This document shows, in pieces, positions 5,020-59,938 of a DNA stretch of 64,000 bases. The stretch is from IMG/VR virus record IMGVR_UViG_3300007513_000001, positions 229,410 through 293,409 of that record, one strand, 5' to 3'. The notes beneath the pieces were generated by a model. That model was not told the DNA's origin and searched no databases. It worked only from the letters and a program-made list of their open reading frames with translations. Numbering within the stretch: the stretch's first letter is position 1; each line of letters opens with the position of its first letter. Made by a program: the position numbers and the translations under genes.

Positions 5020-5460
5020 TTGAAGGATATTTTAACATTGTCAGACAAACACCACAAATCATCTTGGAAGTCTAGATCTTCTCTTGCTGTTACCCCATGG
5101 GGATCTGAGATCCGATGGGCTGCAACTGCCGGAGTAAATGGAAAATGCCTCAGCATTAACAAGGGCATGAGAACAAGCTTAAAATACTATAAGTTAAAAG
5201 ACGAAGTTCTTTTTCTTTACAAGGGGAAGATTTTAGTAACTCACGGAGATGAAAAAACTATAACGCATCCAGAAACACATCCATATGTTCAATCTATTCT
5301 TGCGCCTGGAGAAATGGTAATAGTGCAGAGCCATTGCCCTTACAGGATTGAAGCTTTAGAAGATTCTGAAGTTATTGAAATAGGCTCTCGAGGTCCAGGC
5401 GACACAGTCATGCTGGAGGATGATTTCGGGAGAGCAGATAAAGCAGATAAGGAGCTTTAA
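5020..5460 (+). CDS. cupin, mannose-6-phosphate-isomerase-like
   Basis: TPWGSE...GKCLSINKGMRTSLKYYKLKDE resembles KPWGxE...SLQxHxxKxE cupins; TTG start. Confidence 0.6.
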   Translation: MKDILTLSDKHHKSSWKSRSSLAVTPWGSEIRWAATAGVNGKCLSINKGMRTSLKYYKLKDEVLFLYKGKILVTHGDEKTITHPETHPYVQSILAPGEMVIVQSHCPYRIEALEDSEVIEIGSRGPGDTVMLEDDFGRADKADKEL

Positions 5461-6366
5461 ATGACAGTAACTGACCCATCTTCAGTCAATGTAGTGATAT
5501 ATCACGCAGACTGCACTGACGGATTCGGAGCTGCATACGCAGCTTGGAAACTACTTGGAAATAGAGCTGAATATCATGCATGTAAACATGGTAAACCACC
5601 GCCAGACGTAAAAGGAAAAGTTGTTGCTATTTTAGATTTTTCTTATGACAATGCTACAACTAAACGAATGATAGAAGACGCGGAAGGGCTGATCATCATC
5701 GATCATCATAAGTCAGCAGTCGTAGAATTGCACGATATCAGTAATGCTATTTTTGATATGGCTCATTCTGGAACAGTTCTTTCTTGGAACTTTTTTCACC
5801 CGGGAAAAGAATCTCCTAAGTTTTTGACTTATATTGAAGATCGCGATCTTTGGAAGTGGGAACTCCCATATTCAAAAGAATTTAGTGCAGCATTTGATAT
5901 GGTTCCATTTGAATTCGAGGAATTTGAAAAATTTGAAGACGATTCTGTATTCGATGACGCTGTAAAACGAGGTTCTTACATTTTGGCGTATTCAAAAACT
6001 GTTGTAAAGAAAGTTTGTGAAAAAGCTGAGCCGAGAAAGTTTGAAGGTAAGGATGTACTAGTCGTCAATGCGTCTCACTGGATGTCAGAGATTGGAGCTC
6101 GTCTTTCTCCAGACTGCGATTTTGCGATGATCTGGTATTGGGATCACGTTGCGCAGCACACTAAAGTTTCTCTAAGAGCTTTTCATGAAACTGTGGACGT
6201 TTCTGAAATTTCTAAAAAGTTCGGTGGCGGCGGCCACAAAAAAGCAGCTGGATTTCAGCTTTCCAAAAGTAAGCATGTTGAAGATTTATTTGATAAGCCG
6301 AAAACAACTAGAAAAAAATCTACTAAATCTTCAGCTAAAACTGTAAAGAAAACGGAGACTTCTTGA
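5461..6366 (+). CDS. DHH/DHHA1 phosphoesterase
   Basis: YHADCTDGFGAA, ILDFS, IDHHKS, IEDRDLW, GGGGHKKAAGF. Confidence 0.9.
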   Translation: MTVTDPSSVNVVIYHADCTDGFGAAYAAWKLLGNRAEYHACKHGKPPPDVKGKVVAILDFSYDNATTKRMIEDAEGLIIIDHHKSAVVELHDISNAIFDMAHSGTVLSWNFFHPGKESPKFLTYIEDRDLWKWELPYSKEFSAAFDMVPFEFEEFEKFEDDSVFDDAVKRGSYILAYSKTVVKKVCEKAEPRKFEGKDVLVVNASHWMSEIGARLSPDCDFAMIWYWDHVAQHTKVSLRAFHETVDVSEISKKFGGGGHKKAAGFQLSKSKHVEDLFDKPKTTRKKSTKSSAKTVKKTETS

Positions 6367-8212: not shown

Positions 8213-8570
8213 TAAATTAGCTAATCGTCTCTTGCACGCAAGATATAAACAGCGGCTTCTTGAAGCGATATCAGAGGTAGATGTTGTAGACGATCAAGGA
8301 AATATTATTATTGCTAAAGACTTAAAAGTTCGCCATAAAGATTCTGGTTACGAATATACGGTAGACGATGTAGTTGATGACGCCGGCGCAATTAGTGTAG
8401 TTTTAAGAGAACCTTCAGAGCCCAGGTTTGAGCCGGCTGGCTCCGAAGCGCTATTGGGCTCTCCGCCAAACCAACAGCTTGATCTAAACGAAGACGACGC
8501 TGCCGAAGAAGAAGAGGTAGTTTTTATAGTAGACCAGGCAGAATTTGAAAAGGAGTACGAAGTCAAATGA
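8202..8570 (+). CDS. hypothetical acidic protein
   Basis: ORF overlapping neighbours; RLLEA leader-like site. Confidence 0.75.
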   Translation: MKIDKLANRLLHARYKQRLLEAISEVDVVDDQGNIIIAKDLKVRHKDSGYEYTVDDVVDDAGAISVVLREPSEPRFEPAGSEALLGSPPNQQLDLNEDDAAEEEEVVFIVDQAEFEKEYEVK

Positions 8571-12729: not shown

Positions 12730-13179
12730 ATGATTATGAAAAAAATATTTGCGGGAATAATAAGCCTTCAGCTTATTTTCATTCCTGTTTCTGCTCACGC
12801 TGAAGAGCTAATCGCTAACGTCAATGAAGGAGATCCCGCACCATTTAGTGGTACGCTGTTTAATCCAGAAGCTAGCGCTAGAGTAATAATAGAGTTGGAG
12901 CACGCAAATGCAGCTTGCGACCTTAGAATATCAGAGGCAACTGATAGTTTAACTGCTCGCCATACTTTTGAATTAGAAGTACTTCAATCTTCGCTAACAA
13001 GTTGCAATGATTTATGTACGGCTAGATTAGATATTCGACAGAATCAAATTGATTTTCTAAACCAGGAATTAACTAAGCAAAAGCCAGCAAACCAAACGCT
13101 TTATTTTATAATTGGGGCAGTGCTGGGAGTTGGCTTAACTTTGGGTACTTCTTACGCATATTCAAATATTGTAAATTAG
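12730..13179 (+). CDS. exported/membrane coiled-coil protein
   Basis: Signal peptide, EGDPAPFSGTLF motif, C-terminal TM helix. Confidence 0.7.
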   Translation: MIMKKIFAGIISLQLIFIPVSAHAEELIANVNEGDPAPFSGTLFNPEASARVIIELEHANAACDLRISEATDSLTARHTFELEVLQSSLTSCNDLCTARLDIRQNQIDFLNQELTKQKPANQTLYFIIGAVLGVGLTLGTSYAYSNIVN

Positions 13180-13217
13180 CTTTCATCTACATACTTAGTT
13201 ATGTTCACGGAGTCATT

Positions 13218-14258
13218 ATGCCCAAGAGTAAAAGATCCAACTTATTAAAAACGATAGACAGCATTCTGTTCGAAGACGTATGGCAAAAGTACGGTTCCGA
13301 ATATATGTCTCATCCAATGGATCAAAAAGATTTTGAAGATACCACAGTACCACCAAGCTTGCCCATACAAGCTTTGGATCAAATGGCAACTCAGCTTACA
13401 GTAGAGCGTCCGCCAGTTGAAGATCCCGATTATATTCCTGATGGCGTAGAAGAGCTTTCTAGATCTGCTAGCACCCTTGCGCAGCAAGTTCCGAGAGATC
13501 AAGTCGCTTTTTTCTACGAGAAGATAAAAAAAGATTTAGAAGTTGCAATTGAAAATGAAAACAATCCAGAAACAGTAACTACTAAAAAAGAAGAAGAAGA
13601 GGCGGAAGAAGCTTCGCAGGCAGTTGAAAAAATGGACGAAACTAAAAACTTAAGAAGATATTTAAAAGGTTTGCTAAAAGAACAAGGTCGAGGACCTTCT
13701 GATTGGTCTCAGTTTAAACTGGGTAAACATTATGATGAAGATGAGCCAGAGGAATGGGAACTAGAAGACGAAGATCCACAACCCGCTGGAGGCTCTAATA
13801 AAGATACTATAAAGGGCAAACACATAGCAAAATACTACGGGAAAGCTGGTCCATCAGGAGTAAACGTATCTAGCGATAGATTAATGCAGAATTTTCTCGC
13901 CCCACTTTTTAGCGTACCCTCAGAAGATTTAAGAGATGCAATGGATTATATTCGTTATTTCTATCGCGAGCACGCTACCGGAGAAGAGCCACAAGGATCT
14001 GAGCAGTCATTTGTGAGTTATGTTCTTAAAAAAGTGGTGAAAGATTTAGTTAAAAAGAATCCTGACATAACTCAAACTCTTTTGCCTGCGGTTGTACAGC
14101 ACGTTAAAGAAATGCCAGATAAACAATTTTCAAAACTCATAGACAAAGCTTCGAAAGAATCTTCTAGTGAAATTAAAGCTAGGGGAGAACTTGCGGATAC
14201 TTTAGAAAGAGAAGATCCAGAACAATTTGAGGTCCTTCAAGATTTAGGGCTAGCTTAA
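13218..14258 (+). CDS. hypothetical protein, probable virion component
   Basis: 346 aa; ILFED and internal NLRRYLKGLLKEQ motifs. Confidence 0.75.
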   Translation: MPKSKRSNLLKTIDSILFEDVWQKYGSEYMSHPMDQKDFEDTTVPPSLPIQALDQMATQLTVERPPVEDPDYIPDGVEELSRSASTLAQQVPRDQVAFFYEKIKKDLEVAIENENNPETVTTKKEEEEAEEASQAVEKMDETKNLRRYLKGLLKEQGRGPSDWSQFKLGKHYDEDEPEEWELEDEDPQPAGGSNKDTIKGKHIAKYYGKAGPSGVNVSSDRLMQNFLAPLFSVPSEDLRDAMDYIRYFYREHATGEEPQGSEQSFVSYVLKKVVKDLVKKNPDITQTLLPAVVQHVKEMPDKQFSKLIDKASKESSSEIKARGELADTLEREDPEQFEVLQDLGLA

Positions 14259-25372: not shown

Positions 25373-26992
25373 ATGCAGATTAATAAGACTCTGCTTTTTG
25401 ATGCTGAGGCTAGAAAAGAGATATTAGATGGCGTTGAGACTATAGCAAAAGCAGTAAAGAGTACGATGGGACCAAACGGTCAGACGGTAGTTATAGAAAG
25501 AGAAGGAGCTCCGCCGATCTTAACTAAAGACGGCGTTACGGTTGCTCATGCTGTAAATTTGAGCAGCAATTTTAAAAACCTTGGAGTTCAAATGGTCAAG
25601 CAAGCAGCTGCTCAAACTGCTGAAGAAGCTGGCGATGGCACAACTACTTCGACTGTTTTAACTCACACTCTAACTGCTGAAGGGATGAAATTAATTTCGG
25701 CGGGGTATAAGAGCTCTGAAATTAGAGCTGGTATGAAATGGGCAGTAGAAGAAATTTTGAAAGATCTTGAAAATAGATCTCAACCAGTTCGCGAAGATGA
25801 TGACATAATCAACATCGGGGCTATTTCTGCTAATGGAGATAGAAAGATTGGAGAGCTCTTGCTAGAAGCAATGAAGTCTGTGGGTCCAGAAGGAGTAATT
25901 TCTATTGAAGAAGCGAAAGGGTTTACTACTTCTTTGAAAACAGTAGACGGATTCCAGCTTGACAGGGGATACATTTCTCCATATTTTGTGACTAATCACG
26001 ATAGACTGAGTGTAGAATTTTCTAATCCAAAAATTTTGTTAGCCAATAAGACAATATCTAGTGTAACTGAACTTTTGCCACTTTTAGAACAAGCTCACAA
26101 AAATTCGATTCCATTAGTTATTGTAGCTAATGACGTAGACGGAGAAGCTTTAAAAACTTTGGTGGTTAATCACTCAAAGGGAATAGTGAAAGTTTGTGTT
26201 GTGAGGGCGCCAGAGTTTGGGGATGGCAGAGTAGACAGCATGAGCGATCTTTCTTTATTGTTCGGCACTAAGGTGGTTTTTTCTGGAGAAGAAATACATC
26301 AAAACATAGAAGATTTGGGAACATGCGAAAGAATAGAAGTGTTTAGATCTAAATCTATTTTTGTTGGACCGTCTTGCGAAGATTCTGATTTAGAAGATAG
26401 AGTATCCAATATTCAAAACATGCTAATTTCTCCAGAAACTGAAATAAATCAAAAACTTCTTTTGTCTCGAAGGTTAAGCAGATTGCAGGGCGGAATTGCA
26501 GTTATTAGAGTTGGCGGACATACAGAGCTAGAATTAAAAGAGCGAAAAGATAGAGTTGAAGATGCGCTCCATGCAACTCAAGCTGCGGCCGCTAAAGGGA
26601 TTTTACCGGGTGGCGGAATTGCTTTAGTCAGATCTTCAAGAAATATATTAGATAGGTTTGAAGATATTGCTCCATCGGGCTCTACTGAAGATTTCGGCGC
26701 CGGAGTAAGAGTTGTAATGTCGGCTTGTGAATCTCCGCTCCGTCAAATAGTTTCAAATTCCGGCGGAGCTCCAGATGTAGTATTTAATAGAGCTCTCAAT
26801 CCCGAAGAAGCTGATGAAGGATATGATGCCCGGAAAGGCGAGTTTGTTAATATGTATAATAGGGGTATCATCGATCCCTATAGCGTTGTAAGCTCTGCTT
26901 TGAAGAATGCATGCTCAGCAGCATGTTCAATTATTTCTATCGGATGTGCAATGGTTGAGGAAAAAGATGCAAGTATTGATAAATTAAGTTGA
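25373..26992 (+). CDS. groEL: chaperonin GroEL, divergent
   Basis: TKDGVTVA, AGDGTTT, ISANGD, DRGYISPYF, LQGGIAVIRVGG, RKDRVEDAL, PGGG, GIIDP; no GGM tail. Confidence 0.97.
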   Translation: MQINKTLLFDAEARKEILDGVETIAKAVKSTMGPNGQTVVIEREGAPPILTKDGVTVAHAVNLSSNFKNLGVQMVKQAAAQTAEEAGDGTTTSTVLTHTLTAEGMKLISAGYKSSEIRAGMKWAVEEILKDLENRSQPVREDDDIINIGAISANGDRKIGELLLEAMKSVGPEGVISIEEAKGFTTSLKTVDGFQLDRGYISPYFVTNHDRLSVEFSNPKILLANKTISSVTELLPLLEQAHKNSIPLVIVANDVDGEALKTLVVNHSKGIVKVCVVRAPEFGDGRVDSMSDLSLLFGTKVVFSGEEIHQNIEDLGTCERIEVFRSKSIFVGPSCEDSDLEDRVSNIQNMLISPETEINQKLLLSRRLSRLQGGIAVIRVGGHTELELKERKDRVEDALHATQAAAAKGILPGGGIALVRSSRNILDRFEDIAPSGSTEDFGAGVRVVMSACESPLRQIVSNSGGAPDVVFNRALNPEEADEGYDARKGEFVNMYNRGIIDPYSVVSSALKNACSAACSIISIGCAMVEEKDASIDKLS

Positions 26993-43086: not shown

Positions 43087-43463
43087 GTAAAAAGTCAAAA
43101 GCTCAAATTAAAAAAGATTCTCTAAAAAAAGAGATAGAAGATCTAGAAGAAAAATTAGCTAATTTAGAAAATAAGGTGGATAAAGTTTGGAATTCTCGCC
43201 TTGATTCTCTTCTAGATAAACAAATTAGAAAATTACAATATCTAGAAATGAAACTAGACAAAGGAATTTCAGCGTTAGAATCAACTAAAAGAAAAGTTAG
43301 AGATGCTGGAACTTCTGGTTATTATAGTTGCCATCATGATATTATGGAAGCATGTAACTCAGTATATTCAGCCTGTGCTCACCTTTCAGAGCTCAAGATG
43401 ATAGAAGCTTCAATTAAGGAAATCATTAGAAAAGATGCAAAAAAAGATTCACCTCTTAAGTAA
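43083..43463 (+). CDS. coiled-coil hypothetical protein
   Basis: Heptad pattern. Confidence 0.65.
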   Translation: MSKKSKAQIKKDSLKKEIEDLEEKLANLENKVDKVWNSRLDSLLDKQIRKLQYLEMKLDKGISALESTKRKVRDAGTSGYYSCHHDIMEACNSVYSACAHLSELKMIEASIKEIIRKDAKKDSPLK

Positions 43464-44064
43464 AGTACCTCGAAAAATTGTTCTTGCATGTTCTGGAGGT
43501 TGTGATTCTATGGCTGCATTAGACTTTTTACTTTCTGGAAAGAAAGAAGTCATTGTCGCATATTTCAATCACGGCACTCAGCACGGCCGTGAAGCAGAAG
43601 AGTTTGTAAGAGCTTACTGTGAAGAAAGAAGTCTGAAGCTTTTCGTGGGATCTTGTTCAAAACAAAAAAAGCAAACACAATCGCTAGAAGAATATTGGAG
43701 AGAAGAACGGCTAAGTTGGCTTAATCACGTTTCTGAAGTTGAGTGCGCCCCAGTTGTTACATGTCATCATTTAGATGATGCTGTAGAGTGGTGGATTTTT
43801 TCTTCTTTTCACGGAAATGGTAAGGTTATCCCTCCCGTTCGAAAGCCATTCCTTCGGCCGTTTCTCCTTACAAGAAAAGATACTTTAGTTTCTTGGAACA
43901 CTCGCAAAGAGGTTCCCTGGATTGAAGATCCGTCAAATGAAAAAACAGAGTTCATGAGAAATTATATTCGGCATGAGCTAATTCCCAGAGTGCTAAATGT
44001 AAATCCTGGAATTCATAAAGTAGTAGCAAAAAAGATTAAAGATTTGCATGAAAACTCGTTATAA
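43435..44064 (+). CDS. tilS: tRNA(Ile)-lysidine synthetase, catalytic domain only
   Basis: LACSGGCDS PP-loop, YFNHG, CHHLDDAVE, RPFL, WIEDPSN, RNYIRH; 209 aa, no C-terminal tRNA-binding domains. Confidence 0.9.
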   Translation: MQKKIHLLSKVPRKIVLACSGGCDSMAALDFLLSGKKEVIVAYFNHGTQHGREAEEFVRAYCEERSLKLFVGSCSKQKKQTQSLEEYWREERLSWLNHVSEVECAPVVTCHHLDDAVEWWIFSSFHGNGKVIPPVRKPFLRPFLLTRKDTLVSWNTRKEVPWIEDPSNEKTEFMRNYIRHELIPRVLNVNPGIHKVVAKKIKDLHENSL

Positions 44065-46358: not shown

Positions 46359-46424
<66 letters not shown>

Positions 46425-46441
46425 TCTTTCGAGGTATATAA

Positions 46442-48031
46442 ATGTGCGGATTTTTAACTTATTTTGGAGAAAATGCAGACGTTAAAAAGCTCGCAAAATT
46501 TTCTTCTAAAATTCAATATAGGGGACCAGACAACACTAAAGATGTTTTAGTTAACGAAAAGCTTTTTATGTCTTTTCACAGATTGGCTATTATTGATGTA
46601 ACAGAATTAGGAGATCAACCCCTGCGCCACCCGGACGACGCTGGTTTAGTTTTGGTGTGTAACGGAGAAATCTATAACTACAAAGCACTTATTCAGCAAT
46701 ATAATTTTAAGCCAGGGTCAAATTCAGATTGCGAAGTTATTTTGCATCTTTATAAAAAGTTTGGGATTAAAAAAGCGGTAGAACAACTTGACGGAGTTTT
46801 TGCTTTTTCTTTATACGATTCTAACAAAGATGTTTTATATGCAGCTAGAGATCCCCATGGTGTTCGTCCATGCTTCTTAGCTTTAGAAAAAGATTTTTCA
46901 GCTATCGCTAGTGAAGCTAAAGTTCTAAAAGATATTTCAGATAACATTACTCATTTTCTGCCAGGCACTTGGTGGTCATCAGAATACCCTAACGTTATGA
47001 GCTCCTATTTTAATGTGGAACACAATCCCGTAATTTCAGTGTCGGAAAAAGATGCTTGCGAAAAAATAAAATCGCTTTTAACAGAATCTGTCAGAAAAAG
47101 AATGATGTCAGAAAGAGAAGTGGGGTGTTTGTTATCGGGCGGTTTAGACTCTAGTTTGATTTCTTCTCTAGTTGCTTCAATGTGCGATGACCCTAAAAAA
47201 CTTAAGACTTTTTCTATTGGAATGGAAGGAAGTCCAGATTTAGAATATGCTCAAAAAGTCGCAGCTCATATCGGTTCTGACCATCACAGCATCCAGCTTT
47301 CTCAACAAGATTTTTTAGACGCGATTGACGTAGTGATTTATAATATAGAATCTTACGATACAACCACCGTAAGAGCGAGCGTGGGAAACTATTTAGTTTC
47401 CAAGTACATTAGAGAAAATACTGACGTAAAAGTAGTATTCAACGGAGACGGAGCAGATGAAGTCTGTATGGGGTATGTATATAATGTCAATGCTCCATCT
47501 ACCGAAGATTTCTATTCAGAAAATCATCGCCTGTTAAAAGAAATATACTTGTTTGATGTTTTGAGATCAGATAGAAGTATTAGCTCAAACGGCCTCGAAG
47601 CTAGAACTCCTTTCTTAGATAAAAGTTTTACAAAATACTATATGTCCATACCGCCAAAAATGAAGATGTTTGGTTTAGATAAGCCAGAAAAATATCTCCT
47701 CAGGAAATCTTTCGACGGGACTGGATTGTTGCCAGACGAGGTTTTATGGAGGAGTAAGTGCGCATTTTCCGATGGCGTCAGTAGTATTAAAAATTCCTGG
47801 CATAAGACTCTTAAAAGCTTTATAGATTCTCAAATATCTGATGAGCAATTCGAAAATGAAAAAGATTCTTTTGATTGCTGCAAGCCAGTTTTGAAAGAGA
47901 GCTATTTTTACCGAAAAATATATGAAAACCACTTCGGAGATTCCATGAATTTGATACCTCACTTCTGGATGCCCAAGTGGACTATAGCTAATGACCCTTC
48001 AGCTAGAGAACTAGAAAACTATAAAGAATAA
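46442..48031 (+). CDS. asnB: glutamine-hydrolysing asparagine synthetase
   Basis: N-terminal MCG, RGPD, FHRLAI, NGEIYNY, ARDP, LSGGLDSS, YDTTTVRAS, GDGADE, EARTPFLD, WMPKW..DPSAR. Confidence 0.97.
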   Translation: MCGFLTYFGENADVKKLAKFSSKIQYRGPDNTKDVLVNEKLFMSFHRLAIIDVTELGDQPLRHPDDAGLVLVCNGEIYNYKALIQQYNFKPGSNSDCEVILHLYKKFGIKKAVEQLDGVFAFSLYDSNKDVLYAARDPHGVRPCFLALEKDFSAIASEAKVLKDISDNITHFLPGTWWSSEYPNVMSSYFNVEHNPVISVSEKDACEKIKSLLTESVRKRMMSEREVGCLLSGGLDSSLISSLVASMCDDPKKLKTFSIGMEGSPDLEYAQKVAAHIGSDHHSIQLSQQDFLDAIDVVIYNIESYDTTTVRASVGNYLVSKYIRENTDVKVVFNGDGADEVCMGYVYNVNAPSTEDFYSENHRLLKEIYLFDVLRSDRSISSNGLEARTPFLDKSFTKYYMSIPPKMKMFGLDKPEKYLLRKSFDGTGLLPDEVLWRSKCAFSDGVSSIKNSWHKTLKSFIDSQISDEQFENEKDSFDCCKPVLKESYFYRKIYENHFGDSMNLIPHFWMPKWTIANDPSARELENYKE

Positions 48032-48091
48032 ATTTTATACACTTTTGGTGTTGTGGGTATAGTTTCTTAATCTACGTTTAAGGAGATAAAA

Positions 48092-48391
48092 ATGCTAGAT
48101 AAAATTAAGTCACTTTTGACGAAATACAAGGTACACGTAAGCGTTGTTGGTGGGGCTTTAGTTATTGCTACTGTTTACGGCCAGTGCACTTTAGAGCCAA
48201 ACGTTGAAGCAGTTGAAGAAGCAGTTGAAGAAGCTGCCGATCAAGCAGCTAACTCAACCACGTCTAACGAAGACAAAAAGGTTGAAGCGGCAGCGGCAGA
48301 TGCAGCTATCATGACTGAAGACGCGACTAACGCATCTGAAAATGAAAGTGCTGATACCACTACAGAAGCTACAGAGACTAAAGAAGATTAA
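48092..48391 (+). CDS. small lipoprotein-like acidic protein
   Basis: Hydrophobic N-terminus ending YGQC; A/T/E-rich tail; SD AGGAG. Confidence 0.7.
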   Translation: MLDKIKSLLTKYKVHVSVVGGALVIATVYGQCTLEPNVEAVEEAVEEAADQAANSTTSNEDKKVEAAAADAAIMTEDATNASENESADTTTEATETKED

Positions 48392-48409
48392 AAATAATTA
48401 TGTTTTTTA

Positions 48410-48438
48410 TTGAACAACAGAGTTTTGAAGTTTAAAAT
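48410..48438 (+). promoter_or_regulatory. sigma70-type promoter upstream of the large ncRNA candidate
   Basis: TTGAAC-N17-TAAAAT. Confidence 0.5.
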
Positions 48439-48480
48439 AAAACATAATTTACTAAACGTTCTTTAACATTGCTAATAAAA

Positions 48481-49132
48481 GACCTTAGTTCTTGGGTCTA
48501 CAAACCTGGATGAGATTACCGATCTCCAGGCGCTAGCGAAAGCTGGTGATAGAGAAAACCTCGCTCAGGAAAAAGCTGTTCTTACGGACCTGCCCGCCTG
48601 ACTAAGAGAGGGGATGCGTAAAGGAGGGTGGTACCTCTGAAAATCATCCAGTGATTCGATGCATGGGTTCCCATACCACTGGGAAAATACTGCTGAGAGT
48701 ATCCGCGGACTTGTAGGTTCATCGTGGAAACGGGATAAGGGGACTAACCAAGAAAAAGTCTTGGGAAGAGAGGTTAATACCTTTTAGAATCTAACTGTCG
48801 GTGATAGAAGTCTCTCTGGCGGAATCGGAAACGAGACCGTCGTCCCGAAAGGGGTCGTATGGACATCCTCCCAAGGTTTGGAAATGCGACGCGCAACTAA
48901 GAGGTGAAGTGTACAGCTCACTCAAAGGCGCGCAGAATATCATAATACGACAGTAAGGCGTGCTGTTCCGTAGTCTTACGGCTAAGAACAGGGAGAAAGC
49001 TCGCGAACGGCGTTACTTGCCGGTGTGCTTACATCTAACCCAAAGGGGACAGGCTCAAAAGGCTTGATGATCACGAGCAGAGAGAATAGAAGTGCTAAAA
49101 CTCTCCCCCTTTTTAACAAGACCCGAGAGGGC
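48481..49132 (+). ncRNA. large highly structured ncRNA candidate (~650 nt; ROOL/GOLLD size class or new)
   Basis: No credible ORF, GC-richer than flanks, more than 12 visible helices, several GNRA-capped (CUAGC-GAAA-GCUGG, CGU-GGAA-ACG, UCG-GAAA-CGA, CCC-GAAA-GGG, CCC-GAGA-GGG); lies in the tRNA region. Confidence 0.75.
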
Positions 49133-49144
49133 AAAGAGAAAAAA

Positions 49145-49573
49145 ATGACAGTAGAAATCGGTAGCAAAGTAGTAGTTCATTATAAAGGAACATTAAACAA
49201 CGGTGAAGAATTCGACAGCTCATATTCAAGAAATGAGCCGCTAAGTTTTACCGTAGGAAACGGAGAAACAATCGCGGGTTTTGATTCTGCTGTTGTTGGG
49301 ATGTCTATTGGGGAAGTAAAAAATATTACCCTGAGCCCATCCGAAGGGTATGGGGACGTAAATCCAGAAGCGTTTCAAAAGATTTCAAAGAATCAGTTTC
49401 CGTCAGATTTTGAACCATCAGCTGGCACTTTAGTCGAGGGAATCAATACCCAAGGCCAAAAAGTTAGAGCCATCATTGCAGAAGTTTTTGACGAAGATTT
49501 AGTTCTTGATTTTAATCACCCGATGGCTGGAAAAGAGATGAATTTCGAAATTCAGCTAGTCAACTGCGAATAA
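49145..49573 (+). CDS. FKBP-type peptidyl-prolyl isomerase with insert-in-flap domain (SlyD/SlpA-like)
   Basis: VVVHYKGTL, FDSS, IAGFDSAVVGM, EGYG, LDFNHPMAGK; start moved to ATG 49145. Confidence 0.93.
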   Translation: MTVEIGSKVVVHYKGTLNNGEEFDSSYSRNEPLSFTVGNGETIAGFDSAVVGMSIGEVKNITLSPSEGYGDVNPEAFQKISKNQFPSDFEPSAGTLVEGINTQGQKVRAIIAEVFDEDLVLDFNHPMAGKEMNFEIQLVNCE

Positions 49574-49580
49574 ACAAACT

Positions 49581-49656
49581 GCGGGAGTAGCTCAATTGGT
49601 AGAGCTTCAGCCTTCCAAGCTGATTGTTGAGGGTTCGATTCCCTTCTCCCGCTCCA
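49581..49656 (+). tRNA. tRNA-Gly (TCC)
   Basis: GCGGGAG/CTCCCGC, TCAGC-CTTCCAA-GCTGA, U73, encoded CCA. Confidence 0.97.
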
Positions 49657-49666
49657 TGGAGGTAAA

Positions 49667-49804
49667 ATGGCTAGGGTAAAAATATCAGATTTAGTTCATC
49701 AACAAAAGATTCTTGAAGACAAAATTAAGAAGATACAAATTGTTCTTTGGTCTACTGTTTTGTTTGTTGCAGTTTTTGGATATAAAGTATTGTTTGCCGT
49801 TTAG
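49667..49804 (+). CDS. 45-aa single-TM protein (not in ORF track)
   Basis: ATG after GGAGG; MARVKISDL...IVLWSTVLFVAVFGYKVLFAV. Confidence 0.6.
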   Translation: MARVKISDLVHQQKILEDKIKKIQIVLWSTVLFVAVFGYKVLFAV

Positions 49805-49814
49805 GGGAGACTTA

Positions 49815-50045
49815 ATGAAGACTTTAGTTAAAAAAGGGTCGATAGCCTATCTTAGTCACACTGGTCATAAAGGATTCAGGTATCCATCAAAAGATTCAGA
49901 AAAACTTCTTTTTGATGTAGAGGCTGAGCGAGTTTCTTGGGTTGGCGGTGGAGAAAAATTGACTCCCGTCAAAATTCCAGAATCATCAATTTTAGCTTTG
50001 GGAGATTCTGAAAAATCTGTCGTAGTTTGGGTTCATAAAAATTGA
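49815..50045 (+). CDS. small hypothetical protein
   Basis: ATG after GGGGAG. Confidence 0.65.
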   Translation: MKTLVKKGSIAYLSHTGHKGFRYPSKDSEKLLFDVEAERVSWVGGGEKLTPVKIPESSILALGDSEKSVVVWVHKN

Positions 50046-50077
50046 ACATCTAGCTATTTTAGTTAGAATTAATTTAT

Positions 50078-50154
50078 GCGCCCGTAGCTCAGCTGGATAG
50101 AGCAACGGCCTTCTAAGCCGTGGGCCGCAGGTTCGAATCCTGCCGGGCGTGCCA
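50078..50154 (+). tRNA. tRNA-Arg (TCT)
   Basis: GCGCCCG/CGGGCGT, ACGGC-CTTCTAA-GCCGT, TTCGAAT, encoded CCA. Confidence 0.97.
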
Positions 50155-50179
50155 TTTATAATTTGCAGGAGGAGATGTT

Positions 50180-50251
50180 GTGGAAGTTATTGGAGCGATT
50201 GCCATCAGCAGCATGATTGGCTTGACAGCATTAGCGTCAATTTTTGAATAG
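50180..50251 (+). CDS. 23-aa hydrophobic peptide (not in ORF track)
   Basis: Strong SD AGGAGG 7 nt before GTG; MEVIGAIAISSMIGLTALASIFE. Confidence 0.45.
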   Translation: MEVIGAIAISSMIGLTALASIFE

Positions 50252-50259
50252 GGTTTATA

Positions 50260-50508
50260 ATGAGTTATTGGAAGCGAGAAATTAAAAATTTTTTTATCTC
50301 TCCTGAATCAAGTCGCGTACACTGCACGACAGATATTGATTCGTTGGGGAAAATTGAGATTAACATCGGCCGCAGTATGACATTAAGGCTTTCTATGAAA
50401 GATGCTATGGCTTTGCGAGACGCGATTGCTATTAGTGTTATTAAAATTCAAGATGAGATGAATTATTCTCAAGACCATTCGAGAGTTACAAATGGAGATA
50501 TGGGATGA
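50260..50508 (+). CDS. small hypothetical protein
   Basis: Operon ORF. Confidence 0.6.
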   Translation: MSYWKREIKNFFISPESSRVHCTTDIDSLGKIEINIGRSMTLRLSMKDAMALRDAIAISVIKIQDEMNYSQDHSRVTNGDMG

Positions 50509-50735
50509 GTAAAATGGTGTCGATTTTTCTATCAACTTTAATTTATGTTGGAATGATTGATAATCTCGAGGGCGATTATGCAGCAGTTGAGATGTCTAAT
50601 CAGCAGGGAGAAATAACTCGATTAGAAATTCCTATTTTGCTTTTTCCGTGCGAAGTTTCAGAAGGAGACTACTTTTATACTTTTGAAATCGACGGAGTTC
50701 GAGAAATTCGCTGTGGCGAACCACCAACTGATTAA
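50505..50735 (+). CDS. DUF3006-like small protein
   Basis: IDNLEGDYAAVE...IPILLFP..VSEGD. Confidence 0.6.
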   Translation: MSKMVSIFLSTLIYVGMIDNLEGDYAAVEMSNQQGEITRLEIPILLFPCEVSEGDYFYTFEIDGVREIRCGEPPTD

Positions 50736-50745
50736 AGGAGAAAAC

Positions 50746-50982
50746 ATGTCACAAGGTGTTACTGTAATTGAAGAGTTTATTGAAAAGCTTTTTGCGCTAG
50801 AAAACGAGCAAAAGCTCCTATCAGAAGATAGGAAGCTTCTTATTGCTGATTATAAAGGGAAGCTAGATGTAAAAGCAGTACAAGCTGCAATTCGAATCGC
50901 TAAAATTAAATCAAAAGTAGACAGTTCTGATGAAGAGCTTCATAATATGGTTAATACCGTAGAAAGAAACATCAGTCTGTAA
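50746..50982 (+). CDS. GapR/DUF2312-like DNA-binding protein
   Basis: FIEKLFALENEQKLLSEDRK..IADYKGKLDVKAV..AIRI; ATG after AGGAG. Confidence 0.65.
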   Translation: MSQGVTVIEEFIEKLFALENEQKLLSEDRKLLIADYKGKLDVKAVQAAIRIAKIKSKVDSSDEELHNMVNTVERNISL

Positions 50983-51007
50983 AAAAAGCCTCTTTTTATG
51001 GTATAAT
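50978..51007 (+). promoter_or_regulatory. conserved promoter, copy 4
   Basis: TGTAAAAAAAGCCTCTTTTTATGGTATAAT. Confidence 0.75.
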
Positions 51008-51038
51008 AATACTATAAGGAGGAGGGATAAGACCTCAA

Positions 51039-51479
51039 ATGAAAATTCTTTTTCTACACGGCTTAGAATCTAAACCTGGCGGAACTAAAGCGAAAGCTCT
51101 AGAAAAGGCTGGGCATAAAGTCTTGAATCCAGCACTTCCTAAAGATTCTCTAGAAGAATCTATTGCGATTGCGCAAGGGATCATAGATAGAGACTGGCCA
51201 GATATTATCGTCGGTTCCAGCAGGGGCGGGGCAATTGCAACAGCAGTAGATAGCAAAGGTGCTAGATTGATTCTGATTGCCCCAGCCTGGAAGTTATATG
51301 GTATAACACCAAGAGCTGGTTCGGATACAACAGTGTTACACTGTCCTACTGATGATATAGTTCCCTATGAACATACAAAAGAATTAGCTGAAAAAACTGG
51401 AGCTAAAATTATAGAGTGCGGAGAGTGTCACCGAATGAGTGATAACGATGCTTTGAGTTCTCTAGTAGAATCAGTTTGA
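51039..51479 (+). CDS. YqiA-like alpha/beta hydrolase
   Basis: FLHGLES, VGSSRGG nucleophile elbow, DDIV, CHRM. Confidence 0.85.
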   Translation: MKILFLHGLESKPGGTKAKALEKAGHKVLNPALPKDSLEESIAIAQGIIDRDWPDIIVGSSRGGAIATAVDSKGARLILIAPAWKLYGITPRAGSDTTVLHCPTDDIVPYEHTKELAEKTGAKIIECGECHRMSDNDALSSLVESV

Positions 51480-51487
51480 TTTAACTT

Positions 51488-51516
51488 AAAATGCACCGAA
51501 CATTCGGTGCATTTTT
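51488..51516. terminator. intrinsic terminator, symmetric
   Basis: AAAATGCACCGA-ACAT-TCGGTGCATTTT(T). Confidence 0.85.
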
Positions 51517-51623
51517 GTATATTTTTAGTATCCATTTTGTATTTCGTGATTATTTTTAAATTAGCTAAAATTTTGCTGATAAGGAAATTTTGGTACAAAC
51601 TTGCTTATTAAAGGAGTAAAAGC

Positions 51624-53498
51624 ATGGGTAAAGTTATTGGAATTGATTTGGGCACGACAAATTCGTGCGTGGCTGTAGTCGAGGGTACAAACCCTATAGT
51701 TATAGCTAATGAAGAAGGAAGCAGAACAACTCCTTCCGTTGTGAGCTATAATGATACCGGAAGACTAGTAGGAATAGCAGCTCGTAGACAAGCTATCGTT
51801 AACCCCGAATCTACCGTGTATTCTGTGAAGCGTTTTATGGGAATGAGATTTGACGAATCTAAAACAGAGGTCGAAAAAGTTCCTTACGAAATAGTTTCTG
51901 GAGATAGCGGAGAGTGCCGAATAAAAATTAAAGATAGCAAACTGTCTCCTTCTGAAATATCAGCGCAGATTTTAACTAAGCTAAAGAGGAGTGCTGAAAG
52001 ATATTTAGGCACGACTGTAGACGAAGTCGTTATTACAGTACCAGCTTATTTTAATGACTCACAGCGTCAAGCAACTAAAGATGCTGGAAAAATTGCTGGG
52101 TTAGAAGTTAAAAGGATCATTAACGAACCGACAGCTGCAGCTTTAGCTTACGGCATGGATAAAGCTGGCGAGCAAAAGGTTGCTGTTTTTGACTTGGGCG
52201 GTGGTACATTTGATATCTCAATTTTAGAAATATCAGATGGAGTTGTCGAAGTTTTGAGCACGAATGGAGATACTCACCTTGGGGGCGACGACGTAGATCA
52301 ACTTTTGATTGATTGGCTATTTAAAACTTTTGAGGCGGACACCGGAATAGATCTTTCTAAAGATAGCATGGTTATTCAAAGGCTTAGAGAAGCAGCTGAA
52401 AAAGCTAAAATAGAGCTCTCTACAGCGCAGCAAACTGAAATCAATCTTCCCTTCTTGACAGCTGACGCGACCGGTCCGAAACATCTAACTGCGAATTTGA
52501 CAAGATCAAAGTTTGAACAAATGATAGATTCTTTTGTTCAAAATACACTGGTTCCGGTTAAAAATGCGCTCGAAGATGCAAATATTGCCAAAGAAGAAAT
52601 TGATGAAGTGATTCTTGTTGGAGGGTCTACTAGAATTCCAGCTGTTAGAGATAGAGTTGAGAAGTTTTTCGGCAAAACTGCAAATAGTTCGGTTAATCCA
52701 GACGAAGTTGTTGCTCTTGGAGCAGCAGTGCAGGGAGGCGTATTTTCAGGAGACGTTAATGACGTGCTTCTTCTTGACGTTACCCCCTTATCTTTGGGCA
52801 TTGAAACCTTGGGAGGTGTAACAACATTTTTAATTAATCGAAACACCACGATTCCAACTTCTAAATCAGAAACCTTCAGCACGGCAACAGATAATCAGCC
52901 AGCGGTTGATATACACGTCTTGCAGGGAGAGAGAAAGTTTTCTAAAGACAACAGAACTCTTGGAAATTTTCAATTAGCTGGCATCCCTCCAGCTCCTCGA
53001 GGTTTACCACAAATCGAGGTAACTTTTGATATCGACGCGAATGGTATTTTGTCAGTTTCTGCAAAAGACAAAGCTACTGGAAAAGAGCAGAGTGTAAGAA
53101 TCGAAGGCCAATCTGGGCTTTCAGATAGTGATATATCTGATATGATTAAAAATGCCGAGGCTGCTGCAGAAGAAGACGAAAAGAAGTTTAAGGTTATAGA
53201 AGAAAGAAATAAGTTAGACACTCTTGTATACCAAGCTCAAAAAGCAATGAAAGAAAATCAAGACAACATGACGGAAGATTCTAAATTTTCTCTTGGGGAA
53301 TTTATTATCGCTGCCGAAAGTGCTTTAGACAGCGATAGTTTAGATGAGCTTAACCTAGCGTTTAATAATTTGCAGTCTAAGCTTCATGAAATAAGTTCAG
53401 AACTTTACCAATCGTCAACTACCGCTGAAGATTCTAGCGACACGAGCGATGATTCAGGTGATATTATAGACGCTGATTTTGAAGATGTTGACTCTTGA
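51624..53498 (+). CDS. dnaK: Hsp70 chaperone DnaK
   Basis: [69 protein letters not shown] tail. Confidence 0.98.
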
Positions 53499-57166: not shown

Positions 57167-59938
57167 ATGTTATCAATTAATGGAATACCGATCAAGATCA
57201 AAGTAGCTCGAGACGACAAATCTCGAGCTCATGGTCTTATGGGGGTAAAGAGTATGCCGGAAAACGAGGGTATGCTTTTCGTTTTTTCAGAGTCGAAACC
57301 TAGATCTTTTTGGATGAAAGATACTCTGTTTCCGCTTTCTATTGCTTACATTGACGAAGACCATAAGATTATCAACATTGAAGACATGAAGCCACACGAT
57401 ACTTCTAGTGTTGTCTCTGCTTCACCCGCGATATGCGCATTAGAAATGAACCGAGGGTGGTTTAGAAACAACGGCATCCGACCGGGAGACGCTGTTGACG
57501 GAATCAAAAGGGTTTATAGTGAATCTATTTTAAGGAAATCTATTAGACTATTGTTGAGAGAATCATCTACACCCACACGAACTTCATTTGATATTCCTAT
57601 ACCTGCTGATTTAAAAGATATTCATTCACGAATTAAGTACGCGGGTCGAGAATTATTTTTAGTTGGTGGTGCTGTTCGAGATGCGCTTATGGGTAAAACC
57701 CCTAAAGATTATGACGTAGCAACAAATGCGAGTCCTGAAGCCGTTATAAAAATATTGCAAAAAGATCCAAGTCTTAGGTTAGATTTAACTGGTAAACAGT
57801 TTGGAGTAGTGAGAGTAAAAACTAGTGACGGTGGAGAATACGAAATAGCTACTTTTAGAGAAGACATAGGAAAAGGTAAGTCTACAAAGGTAAAATTTTC
57901 TACGATTGAAAACGATGTTAAAAGAAGAGATTTAACAATTAATGCGCTGTTCTACGATATGGATTCTAAAGAAATCGTAGATTATGTCGGCGGAATTGAA
58001 GACATTGAAAACGGAATAATCCGAGCAGTAGGAAACCCAACTCAAAGATTTGACGAAGATAGAATTAGAATTTTGAGAGCCGTCAGATTTGCTGGGAGGA
58101 TGGGATCAAATTTAGACCCGCAAACTAAGCAAGCTATTTTAGACGACAACAAACTAATAGATACGGAAACTGGTCAGCAGATACCAGCTGATAGAATCAC
58201 TGAAGAGTTTGTAAAAGGGATAAAGTCAGCGCAAGATCCCGTTGGGTTTTTAGCTACTATAAATGACCTCGGTCTTTTTGATCAAATTTTGCCAGGCTTA
58301 GAGCTGAATTTTAGTACTTCTGGAACAACTGACCACATAGCTCAATTGGCTGCGTTGTTAAATAATAATTCTACAGATTCTATATCTTCGACTTTAAAAA
58401 GAATGAGATATTCTAACGATGAACGGAATATCATTAATTTTTTAATTAGTTTTGGAAATATTAATCGAGACACTGCTCCAGCGCTTAAAAAAGATTTCAA
58501 GCGCTACAAGATACCAGAAAGTCATTTAATAGAATATGCAGCGGCTTCAGACAGCCTTTCACAAAATAAACTGGATTCGTTTCTGCAGTTTGCTTCTGAG
58601 CCACCAGCTGGAAACTCTAAAGAATTAATGGCTAAAGGAATCAAAGGGCGAGATCTTGGTGTTGCTCTTGCCGCAGCAGAGGGAGATGCTTTTGCGAAGT
58701 TGATTGGCGAGTCAGTAATCGTTAGGCTTTTGACGGAAGCCGCCAAAGGACCACAAGATCTGCCTGACGGAATATTTGTACAGATCAAGCCCGACGATTG
58801 GGGCGTTCGAGTCGCTTATGTAAACAAGCTCAATAATGTGCTCTCGATGGAAGCTGACATTCGGGGCGTAGTTATGGTAGAAAGGCTTTCAGAAGATGAT
58901 ACGGATTTAGGGCCGTGCGACGACGCATGGATGATCGGATCTTCAGAGGCAGCCCCTGGTTGGGGCCCAATGCTTTACGATGTTGCTATGGAATATGCTA
59001 CTATGAAAGGCGGCGGGCTTATGGCAGATCGAGGTTCAGTCTCTCCAAAGGCTCGTAATGTGTGGGACTATTACATGAATAATCGCGGTGACGTTACAGG
59101 AATCCAGATGGATGACCGCAAAAACACTCTCACACCAGAGGAAGAAGATAATTGTAGCCAAAAGGTTGCCGGTCTTGACAATCGGTCACAACAGGATAAG
59201 TCGAAGCTATCCCCAGCCGGCACTTACAAGACAGATTGGGTTGACTCTCCTTTAAGCAAACGCTGGACAAAACCACCCACCACCATCGAGGCTTTAAGAG
59301 CTGCAGGCAAACTCGTCTGGCATGAAGCGGGCGATCATCTTCCACTCAGAGATTTGGATGCAGAAGGTCCAATCTTGCACTTGGAAAATTTCGTGAAAGA
59401 AATATTAAAAGAAGAAACTTTTAGAATTCTAATACCGAGCCCTCCTTCTGAAAAAGAAAGGTTAAAAGAGCTTCCATACGTAGTTCAAAAAAATCAAAAT
59501 CCGAGCTTTAGCCCAGAGATTTTGAAGACGTTAGATAAGAGAGTTTCAAAGTTATTTAATTTTTTAATAGTGAGCGCTGGATATCCGGACGTTTTTGAAA
59601 GAATAAAAGAAACAAAAAACAGCATAAAACCAATTATCAAGTTTCACAAAAATTATTTTGATTGTCTCCGACCAGATGAATTAGCGGATTCTTATGGGCT
59701 AGATTTTCCTGTTAGCTATTTGGACAGTGCGCAGAGTCCGTCTTATCCTTCGGGTCATACAACCCAAGCGTTTTACTTAGCACATGTTTTGGCAAGTGAA
59801 TATCCAGAAATTTCAGAAGATTTTTATAATTTAGCTCAAATGGTGGCCGACTCTAGAATAGAACATGGGGTGCATTTACCTTCAGACAATGAAGCGGGAA
59901 AACTTCTTGCAAAAACTATATACGGGTGGGAAGTTTAA
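57167..59938 (+). CDS. cca: four-domain fusion: DUF192 + CCA-adding enzyme + GNAT-like domain + PAP2 phosphatase
   Basis: GLM..EGMLF..FWMKDT..PLSIAYI..ALE (DUF192); VGGAVRD..KDYDVAT, EIATFR, RRDLTINA, FDEDRIRILRAVRF (class II CCA); GWGPMLYD..SVSPKARNVW (GNAT-like); K..RP, PSGH, SRIEHGVHLPSD (PAP2). Confidence 0.88.
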   Translation: MLSINGIPIKIKVARDDKSRAHGLMGVKSMPENEGMLFVFSESKPRSFWMKDTLFPLSIAYIDEDHKIINIEDMKPHDTSSVVSASPAICALEMNRGWFRNNGIRPGDAVDGIKRVYSESILRKSIRLLLRESSTPTRTSFDIPIPADLKDIHSRIKYAGRELFLVGGAVRDALMGKTPKDYDVATNASPEAVIKILQKDPSLRLDLTGKQFGVVRVKTSDGGEYEIATFREDIGKGKSTKVKFSTIENDVKRRDLTINALFYDMDSKEIVDYVGGIEDIENGIIRAVGNPTQRFDEDRIRILRAVRFAGRMGSNLDPQTKQAILDDNKLIDTETGQQIPADRITEEFVKGIKSAQDPVGFLATINDLGLFDQILPGLELNFSTSGTTDHIAQLAALLNNNSTDSISSTLKRMRYSNDERNIINFLISFGNINRDTAPALKKDFKRYKIPESHLIEYAAASDSLSQNKLDSFLQFASEPPAGNSKELMAKGIKGRDLGVALAAAEGDAFAKLIGESVIVRLLTEAAKGPQDLPDGIFVQIKPDDWGVRVAYVNKLNNVLSMEADIRGVVMVERLSEDDTDLGPCDDAWMIGSSEAAPGWGPMLYDVAMEYATMKGGGLMADRGSVSPKARNVWDYYMNNRGDVTGIQMDDRKNTLTPEEEDNCSQKVAGLDNRSQQDKSKLSPAGTYKTDWVDSPLSKRWTKPPTTIEALRAAGKLVWHEAGDHLPLRDLDAEGPILHLENFVKEILKEETFRILIPSPPSEKERLKELPYVVQKNQNPSFSPEILKTLDKRVSKLFNFLIVSAGYPDVFERIKETKNSIKPIIKFHKNYFDCLRPDELADSYGLDFPVSYLDSAQSPSYPSGHTTQAFYLAHVLASEYPEISEDFYNLAQMVADSRIEHGVHLPSDNEAGKLLAKTIYGWEV

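Follow-up and report, generated by a model that had tools for sequence, protein, structure and literature searches.

The window analyzed here is a stretch of 64,000 nucleotides forming the last 64 kb of a 293,409-bp IMG/VR virus record with direct terminal repeats. The genome encodes a T4-type large terminase and gave no match to an NCLDV capsid, and is therefore a tailed jumbo phage, with the nearest cultured relatives by large terminase, Flavobacterium phage 'immuto' and Microcystis phage Mel-JY01, being only 41% identical. It carries 8 tRNAs, a tmRNA, a protein with a CCA-adding enzyme domain, a TilS-like PP-loop protein, asparagine synthase, GroEL, Hsp70 and an FKBP-type isomerase. Within the window, a coding-poor stretch lies in a same-strand tRNA island, surrounded by the following features:

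48092–48391 (+): 99-aa acidic ORF immediately upstream.
48410–48438 (+): sigma-70-like promoter match TTGAAC-N17-TAAAAT, weakly supported, about 20 nt upstream of the conserved RNA.
48457–49114 (+): conserved structured RNA of about 655 nt, from an invariant GUUCUUU motif to a terminal hairpin and its U-tract.
49145–49573 (+): FKBP-type (SlyD-like) peptidyl-prolyl isomerase gene immediately downstream.
49581–49656 (+): tRNA-Gly, which with tRNA-Met (45200), tRNA-Asn (46349) and tRNA-Arg (50078) forms the same-strand tRNA island.

An earlier note, made from the sequence alone, had flagged positions 48481–49132 as a roughly 650-nt ornate noncoding RNA candidate in the tRNA region, and this observation is confirmed by our analysis. 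The longest ORF in the stretch is 51 aa and no ORF is conserved across homologs, which rejects a protein-coding reading. The GC content is about 49% (0.48–0.51) compared to about 37% in the surroundings, and the + strand folds better than dinucleotide shuffles (z –4.47) while the – strand does not (z –0.50). The promoter match that the note described is present, but it is only a 9/12 consensus match and is shared only with the closest relative (L091/L002; L numbers denote homologous loci), while in some other loci a tRNA gene sits at this position instead.

We next asked whether the RNA belongs to a known family. At gathering thresholds, Rfam 15 finds only the four tRNAs in the window, a permissive search of 48300–49250 at E≤10 gave three meaningless hits, and ten diverse family members gave nothing relevant at E≤1, so that no match was found to ROOL, GOLLD, RNase P RNA, tmRNA, group I and II introns, OLE, raiA, HEARO or IMES RNAs. 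The ROOL (RF03087) and GOLLD (RF02032) models, searched across the whole 293-kb genome, found nothing at E≤10 with 18 and 50 candidates scored, respectively, though in the ROOL search the control genomes also gave no hit, such that the sensitivity of the search was not independently shown. A group II intron model (RF01998) gave only noise. ARAGORN finds no tmRNA at this position, though it does find one elsewhere in the genome. Full-text literature searches found no description of such an RNA.

To collect homologs, we first followed the neighboring asparagine synthase, which led to one close relative whose contig ends inside the RNA. Exact-pattern scans of viral contigs with conserved stretches then gave nine more copies, and one scan of metagenome contigs with a 20-mer from the most conserved block returned 103 stretches, all of them marine. 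A profile search with nhmmer confirmed the RNA in about 115 loci, of which 91 are full length and 73 are distinct, with one contig (L260) carrying two divergent copies. Together with the window this gives 74 distinct full-length sequences, at 64–87% identity to the window. In contrast, blastn of the region against 50,697 phage records found nothing, so no cultured carrier is known, and a scan of 185,579 prokaryote species' genomes for the invariant 19-mer gave one real hit, a 101-kb contig binned into a Halobacteriovorax MAG that is the same contig as viral locus L128, the other two hits being chance matches with no RNA. Three related contigs that share the upstream asparagine synthase (55–69% identity) but are only 37–66% complete lack the RNA by blastn and by a 3-mismatch pattern search, an absence that carries no weight at this completeness. 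Between two phages whose large terminases are 63% identical in amino acids, the RNA is about 85% identical in nucleotides, which points to strong constraint.

The window and the 73 distinct copies were aligned over 842 columns, and the structure was examined both by a structure-blind covariation scan (G-test with APC correction over 246,051 column pairs) and by an RNAalifold consensus. The scan puts stacked antiparallel pairs at the top of the list, and 47 of the 179 pairs in the consensus, which form about 37 helices, are among the 252 column pairs above the 99.9% quantile. Of 13,167 pair cells, 96.9% are canonical, compared to 38–45% when the 3′ partners are slid by 1–3 columns, and 103 pairs carry double compensatory changes, compared to 32–51 in the slid controls. 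G·U cells outnumber A·C cells 1840 to 136, which identifies the + strand as the RNA. The elements of the RNA, all on the + strand, are:

48481–48498: hairpin whose loop UUCUU (48489–93) forms pseudoknot PK1 with GAGAA (48552–56).
48505–48530: helix CCUGGA/UCCAGG with an inner 3-bp stem.
48531–48548: variable-length hairpin, mostly capped by a GAAA tetraloop.
48559–48611: three-part domain with stems 48559–62/48608–11, 48565–69/48597–601 and 48575–79/48584–88, whose loop UUCUU (48579–83) forms PK2 with AAGAG (48604–08).
48612–48703: two hairpin arms, 48612–49 and 48651–703, whose apical loops GUGGU (48628–32) and ACCAC (48675–79) form a 5-bp kissing interaction, PK3.
48718–48740: block conserved in every copy collected, containing a GAAA-capped hairpin (48721–36) with an internal G·G; candidate functional core.
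48748–48764: hairpin CCAAGA/UCUUGG, whose tip carries an inserted stem–loop in some clades and whose 3′ strand overlaps PK6.
48760–48875: PK6, a long-range pairing of CUUGGGA (48760–66) with the 7-nt loop UCCCAAG (48869–75).
48817–48853: two adjacent GAAA-capped hairpins, 48817–42 and the invariant CCC-GAAA-GGG at 48844–53.
48901–48923: hairpin with the 5-nt loop GUACA (48911–15), holding an invariant self-complementary GUAC.
48963–48991: long hairpin CUGUUC...GAACAG of 11 pairs.
48999–49078: 3′ domain closed by a 7-bp stem (48999–49005/49072–78), with hairpins at 49008–22, 49039–47 and 49050–66 and the helix 49032–35/49066–69.
49080–49114: terminal hairpin (49080–84/49101–05) followed by C5U5, whose loop AAGU (49090–93) kisses GCUU (49027–30), forming PK4.

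Of the eleven helices listed in the earlier note, nine are supported by the alignment. CCUGGA/UCCAGG (48505–10/48525–30) has compensatory changes at all 6 pairs, all of them in the top 0.1% of column pairs, and the GAAA-capped hairpin at 48531–48, GGAUG/CAUCC (48612–17/48644–49) enclosing GAGG/CCUC (48623–27/48634–38), CCC-GAAA-GGG (48844–53), CUGUUC/GAACAG with its inner stem (48963–75/48980–91; 97% canonical, 6 pairs with compensatory changes), CGGC/GCCG (49008–11/49019–22) and GAGAG/CUCUC (49080–84/49101–05) are likewise supported. CCAAGA/UCUUGG (48748–53/48759–64) is conserved but competes with a second conserved pairing, while GAGGUGA/UCACUC is correct only for its outer three pairs, the inner stem being 48908–10/48916–18. 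The remaining two are not supported: for CCAGUG/CACUGG with AUGG/CCAU, covariation supports 48668–73/48680–85 instead, and the last CCC-GAGA-GGG (49122–32) lies outside the conserved unit, which is slightly shifted from the boundaries the note had given. In the 48817–42 hairpin 7 of 9 pairs covary, and the stem of the GUAC hairpin is supported by compensatory AGU/GCU to GGU/ACC changes in the L202 group of loci. Four hairpins carry GAAA tetraloops. In the 48718–40 block 22 of 23 columns are invariant, though a 20-nt stretch of this block was the search pattern that retrieved most members, so its full invariance is partly by construction and copies that differ in it would have been missed; copies found with other patterns carry it too.

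Beyond the nested structure, to which the helix 49032–35/49066–69, missed by RNAalifold, can be added, five pseudoknots or loop–loop contacts are supported by compensatory changes and fail the slid controls. PK1 is 99.5% canonical with 3 of 5 pairs showing compensatory changes (62% canonical when slid by 1), PK2 is 99.2% canonical with 3 of 5 pairs compensatory, PK3 is 97.3% canonical with 3 compensatory pairs (27–39% when slid), PK4 is 98% canonical with C–G to U–A swaps on two pairs, and PK6 is 99.2% canonical with compensatory UCAUGGU/ACCAUGA in the divergent clade. Another candidate, PK5 (48756–59/49015–18), is only moderately supported at 89% canonical. The RNAalifold helix 48460–64/48992–96 is invariant and is broken in three sequences, and so remains unsupported, while the closing helix of the single-sequence minimum-energy fold, which paired the 5′ end with 49120–32, is not conserved and was dropped.

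One feature of the structure remains unexplained. The segment 48759–66 can pair either with 48748–53, as a local hairpin, or with 48869–75, as PK6, and these pairings are largely mutually exclusive. Both are possible in all 50 distinct versions except one that was not parsed, and in the divergent clade, where the hairpin forms as CUAUGAC/GUCAUGG, all three strands changed together: CUAUGAC, GUCAUGGU and ACCAUGA. This may be a folding intermediate, a functional switch or a partly shared arrangement. Such an alternative pairing, together with a terminator-like hairpin at the end of the RNA and an FKBP gene starting 31 nt further on in the window, could indicate a cis-acting leader or conformational switch controlling the downstream gene (FKBP or tRNAs). 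We consider this very unlikely, since the downstream feature differs between loci (FKBP, a tRNA, other ORFs, or nothing within 3 kb), FKBP is upstream in 8 loci, the RNA accumulates without coverage of the downstream ORF (see below), and at 650 nt and about 37 helices it far exceeds any known leader.

To examine expression, we mapped the contigs of four sequencing runs, three marine metatranscriptomes and one DNA run, onto window positions 46400–51900. The three RNA runs have contigs only in the bins 48424–49159, with summed word depths of tens to hundreds and with faint tRNA signals as the only exceptions; within the RNA, the metatranscriptome contigs cover 48523–49077 only. The flanking ORFs in 46400–48423 and 49160–51900, including asparagine synthase, the acidic ORF, FKBP and the downstream ORFs, have zero coverage in those runs, whereas the DNA run covers the whole stretch at about 4–5×. 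In one RNA run the contigs from 48573 to 49074 are identical to the window, and variant contigs carry paired changes at 48627/48634, 48668/48685 and 48671/48682, which are the two sides of predicted pairs. At least 14 metatranscriptome runs from nine studies hold the conserved core. These are assembled contigs that give neither strand nor ends, but the flanking zero coverage rules out DNA carry-over. The earlier note had set a lack of transcripts and of covarying homologs as grounds for refutation; transcripts and covarying homologs were both found. That the stretch is not an RNA gene at all, but a chance GC-rich spacer, a decayed protein gene or a DNA-level element, is contradicted by the compensatory covariation, the strand-specific G·U excess, the transcript-only coverage and the lack of a conserved ORF, with nothing in its favor beyond the absence of experimental data from a cultured system.

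Across the family, the RNA lies on the same strand as its neighbors. In L217 it lies exactly between tRNA-Met and tRNA-Gly, in L218 and L231 tRNA-Met ends where the RNA begins, in the L126 group tRNA-Ser ends 6–10 nt upstream, and in L233 tRNA-Gly starts right after the U-rich tail, so that abutting tRNA genes bound the ends of the RNA in L217, L218, L231 and L233. Overall, 10 of 67 loci have a tRNA ending within 60 nt upstream, 4 of 70 have one starting within 60 nt downstream, and 14 of 27 loci with 1 kb on both sides have a tRNA within 1.5 kb, while several loci have no tRNA within 3 kb. Processing from tRNA precursors therefore cannot be the universal maturation route. In a clade without adjacent tRNAs, the terminal hairpin is GC-rich and followed by U7–9, like an intrinsic terminator, though the window's own hairpin is not called a terminator by a terminator scan.

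No single protein family is adjacent in all loci. The most frequent protein neighbor is the SlyD-like FKBP isomerase, which flanks the RNA in at least 22 loci besides the window, on either side but always on the same strand, followed by the acidic ORF, conserved at its upstream position in about 12 loci. An RNA–protein complex is therefore not excluded, in which the RNA would be the subunit or scaffold for one of these phage proteins or for a host machine such as the ribosome; the near-invariant 23-nt block could be a protein-binding site, and GOLLD has been reported to bind ribosomes in pull-downs. However, among 27 loci with at least 1 kb on both sides only 6 have an FKBP ORF within 1 kb, whole clades lack both genes nearby, and adjacency may simply be inherited synteny among related phages. 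We regard this reading as unlikely, though it is the strongest of the alternatives. A ribozyme, for example one that processes or modifies RNAs of the tRNA cluster or cleaves a host RNA, is somewhat less likely still: the size, the pseudoknotted compact fold and the near-invariant core block are typical of large ribozymes and the RNA sits among RNA-processing substrates, but there is no match to RNase P, group I or II introns or any self-cleaving class in Rfam, there are no flanking exons or intron-encoded protein, and nothing in our data points to a substrate.

The niche of this RNA matches what is published for ROOL and GOLLD, namely a phage genome, a tRNA island, no constant protein partner, and several pseudoknots and kissing loops. 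ROOL is about 600 nt, is encoded by phages and prophages, often near tRNA islands, is highly pseudoknotted and abundantly expressed, and has no known protein partner, but it is described from rumen, Firmicutes and related hosts, whereas this family occurs in marine T4-like jumbo phages and shows no sequence or structure match to it. GOLLD is a large phage RNA next to tRNA genes in which kissing loops and A-minor contacts dominate the architecture, and some GOLLDs are marine and follow tRNA-Met, one characterized example (env-38) coming from a marine sample downstream of tRNA-Met, as some members here also follow tRNA-Met directly. [quoted passage not shown] A highly divergent homolog of GOLLD or ROOL that the Rfam models are too narrow to recognize remains possible but improbable. 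The earlier note had proposed either a divergent member of ROOL or GOLLD or a new class; its interpretation is supported, and it is the second option that the evidence favors. As far as context goes, the RNA works like that kind of RNA without being a detectable member of either family. Among other RNAs, the stable RNA species 1 and 2 (rnaC, rnaD) of phage T4 are non-tRNA RNAs of unknown function encoded within the tRNA cluster of a T4-type phage and matured from tRNA precursor transcripts, but they are only about 120–140 nt and simple in structure, while OLE and raiA are large, ornate, very abundant bacterial RNAs of unclear biochemical function, defined by covariation, but are cellular rather than phage RNAs, and OLE works with membrane protein partners.

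Taken together, our data establish, with near certainty, a genuine structured and expressed noncoding RNA of uncultured marine T4-like jumbo phages: it is transcribed and accumulates far above the neighboring mRNAs, its fold of about 37 helices plus at least five pseudoknots or loop–loop contacts is maintained by compensatory evolution, and it lies on the same strand as flanking genes, often inside tRNA gene clusters and in some genomes directly between two tRNA genes. The rest of our explanation, which we hold as a whole to be more likely than not, is inferred. From gene order only, we infer that the RNA is made as part of, or next to, tRNA-cluster transcripts and that, where tRNAs abut it, its ends are cut by RNase P at a downstream tRNA and by a 3′-end tRNA nuclease at an upstream one, while elsewhere its ends would be set by its own promoter and its terminal hairpin with U-tract. 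By analogy with ROOL and GOLLD, which use kissing loops for assembly, it would then fold through GNRA tetraloops and kissing loops into a compact, stable, trans-acting RNA particle that acts without a dedicated phage protein, possibly as a homo-oligomer, and would serve the phage's translation and tRNA programme during infection. For ROOL, a contact first read from covariation as tertiary proved to be quaternary by cryo-EM, and PK3, PK4, PK6 and the GUAC loop are candidates of that type. For a homo-oligomeric RNA-only nanocage like that of ROOL, the only leads here are the invariant self-complementary GUAC loop and the covarying loop–loop contacts. The conserved alternative pairing around 48748–48766 sits less easily with this view, since it suggests a switch that a purely architectural RNA would not need. 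A more far-reaching possibility, which we consider only tentatively, is that this is an independent class of self-assembling or catalytic giant phage RNA, in which these seemingly intramolecular contacts would be quaternary bridges building an RNA-only particle and the either/or pairing would be a built-in switch that gates assembly or activity during infection.

Giant ornate phage RNAs in tRNA islands are already known as a kind of element, but this family is not detectably related to either known class, occurs in a different phage group and environment, and shows its own architecture. Only a handful of very large ornate bacterial and phage RNAs are known, none with an established biochemical function, and this family adds to them with a deep natural alignment of 74 distinct sequences, unusually clean covariation and direct evidence of high expression in the ocean. 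It offers a well-defined target for cryo-EM and chemical probing. It shows that giant structured RNAs in tRNA islands recur across different phage groups and are not confined to the phages of Firmicutes and mycobacteria. Its genomic company of tRNAs, tmRNA, CCA-adding enzyme and chaperones gives a testable link to takeover of translation, which may help with the question of what ROOL- and GOLLD-type RNAs do.

Outside the window, ARAGORN calls a phage-encoded tmRNA at positions 72354-72761 of the phage's own genome (G000:C1), which also has a second group of four tRNAs (Leu, Lys, Thr, Pro) at 7.6-9.9 kb. Across the terminal repeat, this second group lies about 21-29 kb beyond the tRNA island of the window. 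The phage additionally carries an unusual set of translation and protein-folding genes within the window:
window 25373-26992, GroEL
window 43435-44064, a TilS-like PP-loop ATPase
window 46442-48031, asparagine synthase
window 49145-49573, a SlyD-like FKBP isomerase
window 51624-53498, Hsp70/DnaK
window 57167-59938, a 923-aa protein with a CCA-adding tRNA nucleotidyltransferase domain

We also examined the immediate surroundings of the RNA across the homologous loci. Immediately upstream of the RNA, at window 48092-48391 and in about 12 other loci, lies a conserved small protein with a hydrophobic N-terminus and a very acidic Ala/Glu/Thr-rich tail, which has no Pfam family. On the other side of the RNA, a conserved hairpin with a 7-bp stem (GAGGCAU/AUGCCUC) and a 10-nt loop sits between the 3′-end of the RNA and the ribosome-binding site of the FKBP gene at positions 12700-12745 of L126, one of the loci carrying the RNA, and at the same position in at least 13 other loci (L092, L123, L186, L230, L202, L213, L244, L182 and others). 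This hairpin is absent from the window and is not called a tRNA by ARAGORN. In L217, a further locus in which the RNA lies next to a tRNA array, the array includes a tRNA-Asp call of 95 nt (positions 8291-8385), which is unusually long for that tRNA.

One metagenome contig, L260, carries two divergent copies of the RNA about 7 kb apart (positions 5362-6090 and 12992-13717), with the second copy having a different insertion in the 3′ domain. In addition, a phage-like contig carrying the RNA (L268, PBIO01000025.1) is binned into a metagenome-assembled genome labelled Halobacteriovorax sp., and is the same 101,404-bp contig as the viral locus L128. This is either a binning artefact or a hint at the host.

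Within the RNA itself, three-way covariation was observed between window 48748-48766 and window 48869-48875, where one strand can pair with either of two partners, and all three strands changed together in the divergent clade. This could be a switch or a folding intermediate. Separately, the motif GUUCUU occurs three times in the RNA, at the 5′-end (window 48458-64) and in two hairpin loops (window 48488-93 and 48578-83), with each copy facing a purine-rich AGAGAA-like partner (window 48992-98, 48552-57 and 48604-09, respectively). The similarity of these sequences could allow partner exchange within a molecule or between molecules.
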